The notes: a model not told the origin generated them from the letters alone. Counted from the stretch's first letter, positions 6,201 to 10,849 are shown. The stretch: DNA of 64,000 nt from Macrostomum lignano (GCA_002269645.1 NIVC01000306.1:62001-126000); one strand, 5' to 3'. Numbers and translations: made by a program.

Positions 6201-9200
6201 TGATTTGTAATTGACTCTTAATTTTCTTTTAAAAACTACAGTTTCGTCAAGGAACGGATTCAGTGCATTAGGACACATTTTATTCCAAATAGGGCTTTAG
6301 CACCAGTGGCGCCAGCACCAGGGGCGCCAGCACCAGGGGCGCCAGCACCAGGGGCGCCAGCACCAGGGGCGCCAGCACCAGGGGCGCCAGCACCAGGGGC
6401 GCCAGCACCAGGGGCGCCAGCACCAGGGGCGCCAGCACCAGGGGCGCCAGCACCAGGGGCGCCAGCACCAGGGGCGCCAGCACCAGGGGCGCCAGCACCA
6501 GGGGCGCCAGCACCAGGGGCGCCAGCACCAGGGGCGCCAGCACCAGGGGCGCCAGCACCAGGGGCGCCAGCACCAGGGGCGCCAGCACCAGGGGCGCCAG
6601 CACCAGGGGCGCCAGCACCAGGGGCGCCAGCACCAGGGGCGCCAGCACCAGGGGCGCCAGCACCAGGGGCGCCAGCACCAGGGGCGCCAGCACCAGGGGC
6701 GCCAGCACCAGGGGCGCCAGCACCAGGGGCGCCAGCACCAGGGGCGCCAGCACCAGGGGCGCCAGCACCAGGGGCGCCAGCACCAGGGGCGCCAGCACCA
6801 GGGGCGCCAGCACCAGGGGCGCCAGCACCAGGGGCGCCAGCACCAGGGGCGCCAGCACCAGGGGCGCCAGCACCAGGGGCGCCAGCACCAGGGGCGCCAG
6901 CACCAGGGGCGCCAGCACCAGGGGCGCCAGCACCAGGGGCGCCAGCACCAGGGGCGCCAGCACCAGGGGCGCCAGCACCAGGGGCGCCAGCACCAGGGGC
7001 GCCAGCACCAGGGGCGCCAGCACCAGGGGCGCCAGCACCAGGGGCGCCAGCACCAGGGGCGCCAGCACCAGGGGCGCCAGCACCAGGGGCGCCAGCACCA
7101 GGGGCGCCAGCACCAGGGGCGCCAGCACCAGGGGCGCCAGCACCAGGGGCGCCAGCACCAGGGGCGCCAGCACCAGGGGCGCCAGCACCAGGGGCGCCAG
7201 CACCAGGGGCGCCAGCACCAGGGGCGCCAGCACCAGGGGCGCCAGCACCAGGGGCGCCAGCACCAGGGGCGCCAGCACCAGGGGCGCCAGCACCAGAGGC
7301 GCCAGCACTCACGCAGTCTCCGCATCCAGCTGAGCATCCGCCGGCAGCTGCCAGGCCTCCTGCAGCCGGAAGCGCAGAGAAAGGTCGCTCAGGACCTCCA
7401 ACACGTGGGCCTGTGAAAGGTCTTCAGAATTGGCATTTTCACTGGCTGGTACCGGGGTGTCCAACTCCGCCAGCAGCTGAGCGAGAAGATCTGAGAGGCC
7501 GCCAGTGCCAGCGATGATCAGCAGGGGGCAGCCGGTGACCCGCATGCTGGAGTTCAGGGAGGTCAGGCAGGTGCTGCAAGATCCGCCCACCAAAACACTG
7601 CAGAGTGGAACGGAGGTCATGGCGGGGTCCTCGGCTGTTGTTGAATCTGAAATTATTCAAACAACAGGTATTTTACAACAGGTATTGTACAACAGGTTAT
7701 TGTAAAACTCGACTGGCTGCACAACAGTTGTTAAAAGTCGTGCAGTTGGACGAATGGAAATATGGCACGTAAAACTATTTTTTTTACCTTGAACGCTGGC
7801 TCTTGACGCCGTCTTTGGTTCGGAGTCCCTGGCCCCGGCTGCCAATGTCGGCCAGTCCTTCAGCAGCGCCTCAAAGCGACTGCGGAACAGCCAGCTGGTG
7901 TCGGAGCGGCAGCAGTCGCAGCCGCGGTCTCGGTGCGCGCAGTCCACCAGCAGCAGGTGGTTGTGGTTCGGGTCCAGCGAGTTGGCGCTGCCGTCGCTGT
8001 CTCCATCGCTGGACGAATCGGATTTGTAGTGAGCCGGGTTGCAGCCCTGCGGGATTCCATGGTCCCTGGGTTGTTAGGCACAGCCAATCACAGCCCAGCC
8101 AATCACATCCCAGTCAATCACAGCCCAGCCAATGACAGCCCAGCCAATGACAGCCCAGCCACTCAGCTCAGCCAATCACAGCCCAGCCAATCACAGGGCA
8201 GCGAATCACAGCCCAGCCAATCCCAGCGCAGCCAATCACAACCCAGCCAACTACAGCTCAGCCAATCACAGCTCAGCCAATCACAGCGCAGCTTACAGCG
8301 AAGCTCTCAGATCGAAGACACTCCCGGCCGGCCGAGCGCCCCCAGCTGCAAACCCCAATCGCTCGGACACTGTCCGGGCCATAGGCGTCGCAGAAGTCCC
8401 TGGCCGCCTGGCCGGTTTTTCTGGCCAGACCGGAGCAGCAGTCGGTGACGATCCAGGCACCTGCGGTTCATTAGCATAATTTATGCATAATTAGCTCCAT
8501 AATTAGCGAGAGCACCGGATGAAGCTCACCTGAGCCAGCTGCCGTCTTCCACAGGCCCTTCTGCCAAGCCGCCTTGAAGGAGGCCTTGTCGCAGTCGCTG
8601 CCGTGCACGCTGAGCACCAGGGAGGGCCTGCTGAGGGCCCAGCAGCCCAGCAGCAGCTGCGAAATGTCTGCGTCTGAGCAGGTCTGGGCCACGCGGCAGA
8701 ACTGGGGAGTGGGGAGGGCGGATGTTGTTGCCATGGTGACAGGTACTCCGAGTAGGAATACAGCGACAGTGAGGGACTCGATTATGCACTGGTATCAAAA
8801 CACAGGCCATCACCTGGACGGGGTTGGTAACAGAAACTAATCTGAGGAGGGTTGCCATAGCAAGGTCGAGCATGGGCAAAAGTTCCACCATGAAAACGGA
8901 CATAAGAAGTGTACCGTAGCAACTGTCAGCAGTGTTGCCATAGCAACAGCAATAGTGTTGCCATAGCAACAGCAATTGTTTTGCCATAGCAACAGCAATT
9001 GTTTTGCCATAGCAACAGCACTGAAAAGTGTTGCCATAGCAACATAAATGAAAAGTGTTGCCATAGCAACAGCACTGAAAAGTGTTTCCATAGAAACAGC
9101 AATGGGAAGTGTTGCCATAGCAACAGCAATGAAAGTGTTGCTATAGCAACAGCAATGAATCTTGCAACAGGCACTCACCTGAGCGGTGTTTCCCAGGCCG

Positions 9201-10849
9201 GGAAACTCCACCTCCCCAAAGCAGTTGTTGGCCAGCAGCGCGGAGTCGCAGGTGGCTCCCCAGGCGCGCGGCTCGCTGTCGCGGCAGCCGTGGCTCCTCG
9301 CCGGCTCCAGTCGGCGCAGCCGCAGCGGCGCCAGGGCGGACGGCGCCGAGGCCGCGGACTCCAGCAGCCGCAGGCAGGCGCGAGCCTTCGGACCCGCCTC
9401 TCTGGCGCAGTCCAGGGCCGACCTGCCCGACTGCGATTTGGGATTCGCTTCCGGTCTGCGCTTGTCTGCCTCTCCCCACTTCCGGTCTGCGTTTGACTGC
9501 CTCTCCCCACTTCCGGTCTGCGGTTGACTGCCTCTCCCACTTCCGGTCTGCGTTTGACTGCCTCTCCCCACTTCCCGTCTGATCAATGCTGCCTCTCCCC
9601 ACTTCCGGTCTGCGTTTGACTGCCTCTCCCCACTTCCCGTCTGATCAATGCTGCCTCTCCCCACTTCCGTCTGATCAATGCTGCCTCTCCCCACTTCCGG
9701 TCTGATCAATGGTGCCTCTCCCCACTTCCGGTAAGTGCTTGACTGCCTCTCCCCACTTCCGGTAAGTGCTTGACTGCCTCTCCCCACTTCCGGTAAGTGC
9801 TTGACTGCCTCTCCCCACTTCCGGTCTGATCAATGCTGCCTCTCCCCTCTTCCGGTAAGTGCTTGACTGCCTCTCCCCACTTCCGGTCTGCCCCTAGAAG
9901 CAGAGATTCCTCAGGGCTCTCACCGAGTCCGGCAGCGCCAGGTCGCAGAGGTCGCTGACCAGCAGCTCGGCCAGGCAGTCGGCCTCCCCGAGCTCGACCG
10001 CCCAGTGCAGCGGCGCCCGGCCACGGCCGTCCAGCGAGTTGACGGCCTCCCGGGACATCGCCGGCAGCAGCAGCGCCGCGGGAAGCGGGCGGTTGAGCCG
10101 GCAGGCCACGTGGATTGGCAGCTCGCGGCGCTGAGGGAGGCGGGCGGAGGGCATAAGCTGATGGGGCGGCAGCTGGACTGGCACCCACCCGTCACTCTTT
10201 CTGTCACTCTACCTGTACTCCACCCGTCACTCCACACCACCCGTTGAAAACGAGGGTTAAACTTGAAAGTAAATAAACGAAAAGTAACTTTTGGTTGGTT
10301 AATTTAACATCAATTTACCAACCACTCATCACTCCACTCGTCACTCCGTCCGTCACTCCACTCATCACTCCACCTGTCACTATACATGTACTTGTCGCTC
10401 AGCATGTCACTCCACATGTCACTCCACATTTCACTCTACTTATCACTCCACCTGTCACTACAATTGCCGCTTCAAATGTCACTCCACCCGTTACCCCACC
10501 CGTCACTCCACCCGTCACTCTACCCATCACTCCACCCGTCACTCCACTCGTCACTCCACCCGTCACCCCACCGCAGCCTCACGGAGTTGCTCAGCTCAGC
10601 CAGGCCCGGCGCCATCTCCAGCAGGCCTCGAACTCCGTCCCGATTGTCCGCTGCTACCGCTGCGTGCAGCAGCCGACAGCTCAGCAGCTCTCCGCCTCCG
10701 ACATCATCCAGCCGCAGCTGCAGCTCCCGCTGCGGATCGGGCCAGAGCTCCAGCAGCTCCTGGAAGCTGAGGCTGCGAAGCTGTCGCTCTGTCAATTCGG
10801 CAACATCGACAATAATTGGGTCACTCACTGCAGCGGATTCTGCTGCCAT
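208..10849 (-). CDS. TRPM: Ankyrin-repeat / TRPM-family cation channel, N-terminal ~984 codons (S1-S6 pore region lies left of the window)
   Basis: 14 phase-consistent exons: 10849-10583, 10130-9924, 9430-9179, 8701-8530, 8460-8297, 8046-7788, 7646-7313, 6131-5898, 5591-5435, 3952-3813, 2874-2587, 2065-1852, 1216-1062, 316-208. TRPM motifs in canonical order: [151 protein letters not shown]. The start ATG at 10849 is tentative. Confidence 0.9.
389..972. repeat. (GACA)n microsatellite
   Basis: Direct reading; lies in a TRPM intron. Confidence 0.97.
1420..1846. repeat. Degenerate 12-bp minisatellite (aagatccccact)
   Basis: Direct reading; abuts the splice donor at 1851. Confidence 0.9.
2122..2500. 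repeat. Perfect 14-bp minisatellite (tagatcccagatcc)
   Basis: Direct reading. Confidence 0.97.
2905..3751. repeat. (CTA)n microsatellite with CTG interruptions
   Basis: Direct reading; source of the spurious poly-L and poly-V ORFs. Confidence 0.97.
4190..5196. mobile_element. Non-autonomous hAT-type element (MITE-like) with an internal 21-bp tandem array
   Basis: Imperfect TIRs CTGGGGCCTCGCCA / TGGCGACGCCCCTG (12/14). Flanks tacagata (4182-4189) and tacaggta (5197-5204) form a 7/8 8-bp TSD, typical of hAT. Confidence 0.75.
4304..5080. repeat. 21-bp minisatellite (gcggcgctaaaatgagtgcct) inside the hAT element
   Basis: Direct reading, about 37 copies. Confidence 0.97.
5270..5395 (+). mobile_element. 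CORE-SINE (MIR-like core) fragment
   Basis: 5329-5388 acccattttacagctggttgaactgaagcaatgcagagttgagtgtcttgctcaaggaca aligns by eye to the CORE consensus CCCATTTTACAGATGAGGAAACTGAGGC..AGAGGTTAAGTGACTTGCCCAAGGTCA. Confidence 0.7.
5650..5875. repeat. 31-bp minisatellite (ccctccaataattatgccgccaccctcttca)
   Basis: Period 31 (5681, 5712, ...). Confidence 0.9.
6298..7307. repeat. Near-perfect 15-bp minisatellite (gcaccaggggcgcca)
   Basis: About 67 copies; starts within a few nt of the donor at 7312. Confidence 0.98.
8080..8292. repeat. 15-bp CCAAT-containing minisatellite (cagccaatcacagcc)
   Basis: Direct reading; about 10 AGCCAAT. Confidence 0.88.
8727..9150. promoter_or_regulatory. Tandem cluster of about 11 RFX X-box motifs in TRPM intron 3
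   Basis: Exact GTTGCCATAGCAAC at 8934, 8957, 9030, 9057 and 9111. Variants at 8727 (GTTGCCATGGTGAC), 8851, 8980, 9003, 9084 (GTTTCCATAGAAAC) and 9137 (GTTGCTATAGCAAC). The motifs are certain; function is inferred. Confidence 0.6.
9445..9892. repeat. ~30-31-bp minisatellite containing CACTTCCGGT
   Basis: About 15 units, 10 with exact CACTTCCGGT. Confidence 0.92.
10175..10570. repeat. Degenerate ~12-16-bp minisatellite (cgtcactccacc)
   Basis: Direct reading; TRPM intron 1. Confidence 0.85.

Follow-up and report, generated by a model that had tools for sequence, protein, structure and literature searches.

Can a gene of the TRPM channel family begin with ankyrin repeats? The question is raised by a stretch of 64,000 nucleotides from the flatworm Macrostomum lignano (GCA_002269645.1 NIVC01000306.1:62001-126000), hereafter called the window, with positions counted from its first letter. 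Its initial annotation had proposed a TRPM-family channel in which ankyrin repeats precede the TRPM N-terminus. Among TRP channels, TRPC (four repeats), TRPV (six), TRPA and TRPN carry N-terminal ankyrin domains that connect directly to a linker and the pre-S1 region. Our analyses indicate that the window probably contains the first 15 exons, with 1009 codons, of an ankyrin-fronted TRPM2-like cation-channel gene of M. lignano. Its predicted ankyrin domain would form a similarly short cytoplasmic solenoid, with a repeat number like that of TRPC, but, unlike those of TRPC, TRPV, TRPA and TRPN, it precedes a complete melastatin region.

The gene model occupies the minus strand from 10849 to 208 and consists of 15 exons with GT-AG at every border and 1009 codons without a stop, a slightly longer frame than the 984 amino acids initially modelled. 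The first three exons (10849-10583, 10130-9924 and 9430-9179) are all in phase 0, and the reading frame continues from them through exon 4 and the 11 exons that follow, so that the claim of an in-frame splice between ankyrin repeats and TRPM N-terminus holds. The resulting protein order is ankyrin repeats, linker, SLOG or melastatin homology regions 1 and 2 (MHR1/2), MHR3/4 and pre-S1. Exon 1 (10583..10849, 89 codons) starts at ATG 10849 and encodes an 18-residue unique N-terminus and repeat 1 (residues ~55-89) before a GTGAGG donor. Exon 2 (9924..10130, 69 codons) encodes repeats 2 and 3 (ELPIHVACR...) between AG/GT borders in phase 0, and exon 3 (9179..9430, 84 codons, residues 159-242) a putative capping repeat 4, the linker and the first TRPM motif. 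The SLOG or MHR1/2 domain is distributed over exons 4-7 (8701-8530, 8460-8297, 8046-7788, 7646-7313), the end of MHR1/2 and MHR3/4 (the TRPM2-like domain) over exons 8-13 (6131-5898, 5591-5435, 4087-4034, 3952-3813, 2874-2587, 2080-1852), and a further linker and the pre-S1 helix over exons 14-15 (1216-1062, 322-208), all on the minus strand. The front two-thirds of a TRPM2-like gene lie in the window; the last exon here (322-208) stops at pre-S1 and is followed by an intron reaching the window edge. No further coding exons were found 5' of 10849 as far as ~14.8 kb, a region that holds only a 26-bp tandem array.

Is the N-terminal module a genuine ankyrin domain? A Pfam search with the first 348 amino acids gave an Ank_2 match at residues 61-149 (E=4.8e-13, 49.9 bits, gathering score 27.3), and the full model gave one at residues 95-181 (E=6.1e-8, 33.6 bits); taken together, the two envelopes span four units of 33-35 residues (55-89, 90-124, 125-158 and 159-~190). 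Exon 2 on its own, encoding repeats 2 and 3, is matched by both Ank (E=1.3e-5, 25.7 bits, cut-off 21.1) and Ank_2 (E=1.7e-5). The module thus contains at least two tandem repeats of ~33 residues above the curated Pfam threshold, as required of an ankyrin domain. On either side of these two clear repeats, repeats 1 and 4 represent weak or capping units; they are supported by the multi-repeat envelope and the consensus pattern, and repeat 4 additionally by helix pairs in an AlphaFold2 (AF2) model of residues 1-419. Its helices 163-169 and 171-186 form the best-predicted helix pair of the N-terminus, with a predicted local distance difference test (pLDDT) of 69-80. The initial count of about four repeats is accordingly reasonable by the envelopes, with the reservation that the two outer units are weak and insignificant alone. 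The AF2 model was obtained from a 16-row alignment, a single-sequence run having been unusable (pLDDT 39.6), and displayed no confident interface between the ankyrin and SLOG parts. Between the repeats and SLOG, exon 3 encodes a low-complexity linker of about 40-50 residues, rich in Ala, Pro and Arg.

Downstream of this linker, the TRPM scaffold is readily recognised. On the full model, Pfam places LSDAT_euk, the SLOG domain of TRPM, at residues 241-502 (E=1.5e-24, 87.3 bits against a cut-off of 25.7) and the TRPM2-like domain PF25508 at residues 624-895 (E=1.6e-46, 160 bits), and these two matches, like that of Ank_2, each exceed the Pfam gathering score, which provides the significant profile matches that the architecture called for. 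The best solved relatives in a phmmer search of the PDB are TRPM2 channels (nvTRPM2 6co7, E=1.8e-59), with homology beginning at residue ~213-226, within exon 3. This exon also carries the motif CFGEVEFPG beside putative repeat 4, and G230 and F234 of the motif are near-invariant across the TRPM alignment. The initial argument that last repeat and first TRPM motif share one exon consequently stands for the motif and is softer for the repeat, which is not significant alone. The pre-S1 region aligns with zebrafish TRPM2 as far as residue 1007. In the AF2 model the SLOG half is credible (pLDDT 78-87) and the ankyrin part is of low to medium confidence; a Foldseek search with the predicted fold of residues 229-419 returned TRPM2 MHR1/2 as top matches (E~1e-11). 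The gene thus shows the succession expected of a TRPM, with MHR1/2 represented by SLOG, followed by MHR3/4 (PF25508) and pre-S1. The TRPM N-terminus is not complete, as had been claimed, in one respect: the linker (residues 182-225) lacks the Cys-rich pre-MHR motif (CxCG...H). This segment precedes MHR1/2 in most, but not all, TRPMs and has been lost in several lineages (PMC13143021), so that it is not strictly defining for the family.

A number of observations weigh against an ankyrin-fronted TRPM2-like channel gene. The transmembrane channel domain, the TRP helix and the C-terminus of the window copy lie beyond window position 1, and the proposed channel is therefore seen here as its TRPM scaffold. 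The glycine motifs of SLOG are partly degenerate (SVHGSD for SVTGGA, TDCCSG for TGGTNTG), although the near-invariant G276, G310 and G316 are retained; given these altered motifs, nucleotide binding at MHR1/2 is not to be assumed, and to judge from the sequence its ligand binding may differ from that of TRPM2. When scanned singly, exons 1 and 3 gave no Pfam Ank match, which leaves repeats 1 and 4 below threshold on their own, and the AF2 pLDDT of residues 1-126 (units 1 and 2) is below 50. An in-frame ATG with a strong Kozak context (caccATGG) at 8734 on the minus strand (tract 8702-8734), 33 nt 5' of exon 4, could in principle begin an ankyrin-less isoform. Finally, a word-index homologue search recovered neither a transcript nor an RNA-derived protein for the window copy; this silence is weak evidence, because the same search missed two M. 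lignano proteins described below (P0004 and P0007) in two runs despite 91-98% identity.

Both the ATG at 8734 and the failure of exon 3 alone to give a significant Ank match would also suit a different account, in which an ankyrin gene and a separate TRPM gene downstream of it, for example neighbours in a trans-spliced operon, had been mis-joined, and M. lignano does trans-splice ~39% of its genes and has polycistronic units (PMC5730564). We nevertheless consider such a mis-join extremely improbable. Exons 3 and 4 contain no Met, although exon 3 bears the conserved TRPM motif FGEVEF; the ATG at 8734 lies within a degenerate copy of the 27-bp unit repeated in this intron, and a start there would lose FGEVEF, so that this ATG is probably fortuitous. 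Moreover, coding sequences of transcript-derived paralogs cross the same junctions, in an annotation that cuts at trans-splice sites, and intron positions are shared with a paralog that is only 41% identical. Together with the tree presented below, in which these ankyrin-bearing genes form a clade at 100%, the paralogs and their shared introns uphold the initial view that two genes had not been mis-joined.

The paralogs came from an exhaustive protein search with exon 13 alone as query, which yielded 412 relatives, the long ones of which were run through Pfam. The proteins nearest to the window model are all from M. lignano, and two of them hold the whole layout within single coding-sequence models: P0007 (PAA85706.1, Mlig003066g1, 1781 aa), with Ank_2 at 133-219, SLOG at 279-539, TRPM2-like at 652-877 and Ion_trans at 1019-1278, and P0156 (PAA68780.1, Mlig025325g2, 1889 aa), with the same domains at 109-196, 348-589, 699-964 and 1106-1374. 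Along their full length, pore and NUDT9H region included, both can be aligned with Lingula and fish TRPM2, and neither gave a Pfam NUDIX match at E<=1e-3. Since the GenBank models of this assembly are a 'coregenes' subset of a genome-guided RNA-seq assembly, with boundaries cut at trans-splice and polyA sites (PMC5730564), the ankyrin-to-SLOG joins of these paralogs are transcript-derived. P0156 is 41% identical to window residues 58-419 and collinear with them through the repeats (ELPIHVACR; GRTPLHWAL; LPDS/SG against LPDS/EG, the slash marking the junction). Its ankyrin introns at 138/139 and 224/225 (locus L002) are homologous to those at 89/90 and 158/159 of the window model, and the 69-codon exon 2 is identical in length at the Mlig003066 locus L001. 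P0156 keeps CPCGQPADTHE between the ankyrin repeats and SLOG, a motif that is absent from the shorter linker of the window type and Mlig003066.

Further models come from the older ML2 assembly, where P0002-P0005 are frame-shifted versions of the window gene type. P0004 carries exon 3 with window-specific variants joined to window-type exons 4-15; P0004 and P0005 run on into S1 'LAYIIFLGLYSYTLLFHF', and P0003 extends further into the transmembrane region (S1-S3). Coming from an independent assembly, these models corroborate the gene as well as its extension into a membrane domain. Exon 12 (2587-2874, 288 nt), which encodes a conserved TRPM motif, is left out of P0004 and P0005 with the frame kept, probably through a prediction error beside a (TAC)n array; an exon-skipping isoform is possible.

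Two structural peculiarities were observed at the Mlig003066 loci. In Mlig003066g1 (L001 14144-14809), the counterpart of window exons 7-9 is one 222-codon exon, so that the paralogs differ by two introns lost or gained. At the Mlig003066g3 locus, the homologue of window intron 1, exon 2 and intron 2 is present twice, ~4 kb apart (L003 10871-11659 and 15125-16185), an internal duplication of the ankyrin-exon region.

How does the window copy relate to Mlig003066? A tract of ~3 kb (7821..10795, minus strand), from part of exon 1 to part of exon 6, is near-identical to Mlig003066 sequence at L001 10169-13630 and L003 10169-18648, with exon identities of 98.70% (g1) and 99.19% (g3) and identities of 96-97% in non-repeat intron pieces. 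It contains the ankyrin exons, the linker and the first half of SLOG, introns included, and its breakpoints are sharp and in frame, at 10795 (exon 1, before LTERQ) and 7821 (exon 6, after GARDS). Outside the tract, protein identity to Mlig003066 is 34-81% per exon, about 58% overall, and at the DNA level exon 9 alone is detectable (about 85%). That the window is the Mlig003066 locus itself was considered and rejected, as the flanks differ and the Mlig003066 locus has a CLASP gene upstream and exons 7-9 fused. The sequence comparison would most simply be read as ectopic gene conversion between two old paralogs in the recent past, or as a 5' module exchanged between them.

Breakpoints as abrupt as these could alternatively have been produced by the assembly, through collapse or mis-joining of two paralogous loci within exons 1 and 6, in a genome that is very rich in repeats and partly duplicated, blocks of at least 95% identity amounting to 180 Mb (PMC5730564). 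Such a chimera appears very unlikely to us: P0004, which comes from another assembly as its indel differences from the window indicate, joins the window-specific exon 3 variants (SEPRAWGAT) to window-type exons 7-15, and the tract is no copy-paste of g1 or g3, since it diverges from each of them by 0.8-1.3% and in repeat copy number.

The mosaic tract and its sharp breakpoints also bear on whether the window copy is a working gene. They would fit a silent or decaying recombinant duplicate, in which the 5' module of Mlig003066 was pasted onto an older paralog and, in contrast to the paralogs, no functional ankyrin-TRPM protein is expressed. In the same direction, no window-type GenBank (PAA...) protein was recovered, the models being ab initio ones from ML2, and eight of the 16 nucleotide differences between the tract and g1 alter the amino acid, which indicates no more than mild constraint, over very few sites. 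On balance, we think it unlikely that the copy is silent or decaying. A frame of this length has remained open and all 30 of its splice borders are canonical, both breakpoints are in frame with each locus retaining its own ATG-initiated 5' end, and TRPM motifs are conserved in the non-converted exons. In addition, the annotation dropped transcripts overlapping repeats (PMC5730564), and the introns of this gene are filled with them.

When was the ankyrin module gained? A neighbour-joining tree was built from residues 441-1009 only (495 columns, 200 bootstraps), thereby excluding the ankyrin module and the converted tract. The window model grouped with Mlig003066 (100%), and these two with Mlig025325 (100%), so that three ankyrin-bearing groups form one clade. 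All sampled flatworm TRPMs formed a single clade (100%), in which the ankyrin clade was sister to the remaining ones (84%). The collinearity of P0156, the shared intron positions and the 100% clade together indicate that the ancestor shared by the three paralog groups already had the module, and the fusion is thus real and fairly old. Because the Cys-rich motif of P0156 lies between its repeats and SLOG, the ankyrin module was inserted upstream of a normal TRPM start.

The distribution of the architecture was surveyed among the best 150 cluster representatives of the search relatives. None of 25 other TRPM relatives, 15 of which have an intact N-terminus, gave a Pfam Ank match at E<=1e-3. The 25 include the M. 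lignano groups Mlig001812, Mlig004938 and A0A1I8HSQ2, proteins of the flatworms Schistosoma spindale, S. rodhaini, Echinostoma, Paragonimus, Opisthorchis, Calicophoron and Taenia, TRPM2 or TRPM2-like proteins of Lingula, Lottia, Sinanodonta, Bulinus, Diadema, Glandiceps and Tachysurus, and four further proteins. The combination of ankyrin repeats and TRPM was unusual rather than common among the TRPMs sampled; it looks restricted in distribution, and its gain lineage-restricted. The initial description of a lineage-specific chimera is borne out to that extent and needs amending in others, as this is not a single novelty: at least three paralog groups share it, the proteins are deposited, and a related schistosome channel, TRPM_MCLZ, has been published.

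We infer the following history and organisation. A single gain in the ancestor of the window type, Mlig003066 and Mlig025325 would have placed the ankyrin module ahead of the normal TRPM start, and the Cys-rich pre-MHR segment would later have been lost from the linker in the window type and Mlig003066. If expressed, the window protein would presumably tetramerise like other TRPMs and act as a channel. The outer layer at the bottom of the cytoplasmic ring is built from MHR1/2 in known TRPM structures, which suggests that the ankyrin arm would project at the periphery, exposed to solvent. There it may serve in protein docking or regulation, either binding partners or folding back on MHR1/2 or NUDT9H. 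The ligand-, protein- or cytoskeleton-coupling role proposed initially is likewise conjectural.

Among known systems, TRPM2 channels (nvTRPM2 6co7, zebrafish, human) share with the window gene the order of SLOG or MHR1/2, MHR3/4 and pre-S1. Relative to them, the window gene adds an ankyrin module of ~190 residues in front, is missing the Cys-rich pre-MHR segment and has partly degenerate SLOG glycines; the TRPM2s that were scanned had no Pfam Ank match. The TRPM2-like backbone is also common to the TRPM_PZQ-type 'nudix' subclade (Schistosoma spindale 2242-aa protein, Echinostoma, Paragonimus, Taenia), whose members have no ankyrin module and begin SLOG near residue 50; the ankyrin clade is sister to them rather than nested among them (84%). 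The nearest published precedent is TRPM_MCLZ (Smp_333650), a meclonazepam-activated TRPM-like channel of schistosomes with N-terminal ankyrin-like repeats (PMC10788528, PMC11731825, PMC12861061), and likewise a flatworm TRPM-family channel with an ankyrin-like N-terminus. As described by the Marchant group, this protein of 1380 aa, encoded by three exons, is without MHR1/2-SLOG and without NUDT9H or any C-terminal enzyme domain. By comparison with this description, the window clade retains SLOG and MHR3/4 and its paralogs a NUDT9H-like C-terminus. An ankyrin-like N-terminus without SLOG, the arrangement of TRPM_MCLZ, is not what the window holds; with SLOG clearly present, its architecture differs from the published one.

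We found no description of a TRPM with both ankyrin repeats and SLOG in the literature. A survey of TRPM domain gains and losses (Morini et al. 2026) mentions neither flatworms nor an N-terminal ankyrin gain, and one survey including M. lignano states that TRPM architectures show 'fewer ankyrin repeat domains'. UniProt labels one M. lignano model with Ank_2 and LSDAT_euk as 'ANK_REP_REGION domain-containing protein'. The architecture is thus deposited in GenBank and UniProt and apparently undiscussed.

In almost every intron of the window gene, a long minisatellite or microsatellite peculiar to that intron predominates, with copy numbers that vary between paralogous loci. Arrays in introns and flanks lie at 390-973, 1423-1844, 2122-2501, 2906-3751, 4306-5080, 5645-5871, 6299-7308, 8081-8292, 8931-9159, 9448-9891, 10322-10572, 10864-11133 and 11669-12508; examples are (GACA)x146, (TAC)x282, a 15-mer x67, a 21-mer x37 and a 14-mer x27 at 100% identity, and several intron arrays translate as long spurious open reading frames. 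Such repeat-filled introns are in keeping with the 15% share of simple and tandem repeats in the genome (PMC5730564).

Elsewhere in the window, open frames of 250 and 389 aa without a Pfam match (15847-19279, minus strand) may represent exons from an uncharacterised gene located on the 5' side of the TRPM gene. A homologue of PPP1R32 was found at 48755-49582 (plus strand, E=2.4e-48). The remaining features are gene fragments: an exon of an MFS transporter (24775-25080), a BTB/POZ domain (39118-39651) and a PB1 domain (46596-47102), all three on the minus strand, and a nuclear-receptor zf-C4 DNA-binding domain (60852-61528, plus strand).

What would this gene mean for the TRPM family? The importance of the finding is tempered by the fact that the proteins, though unnamed, are already deposited, by the apparently lineage-restricted gain, and by the conjectural role of the ankyrin arm. 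One speculation, to which we attach a low probability, is that the Macrostomum clade with ankyrin repeats and SLOG preserves the ancestral form of the TRPM_MCLZ of parasitic flatworms, the ankyrin gain having preceded a loss of SLOG in Neodermata. In the neighbour-joining tree the other flatworm TRPMs sampled together form the sister group of the ankyrin clade, which contains no sampled parasite orthologue; this position is compatible with an ancestral form without demonstrating it. If true, it would explain why a 'TRPM-like' channel bears ankyrin repeats, and the clade targeted by an anthelmintic benzodiazepine would have a free-living, transgenic model. In any event, a clade in which an intact melastatin region is preceded by a canonical ankyrin module offers a clean case of a domain secondarily acquired by TRPM. 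M. lignano can be made transgenic, and the clade may also shed light on how TRPM_MCLZ, a drug target with an ankyrin front, arose.

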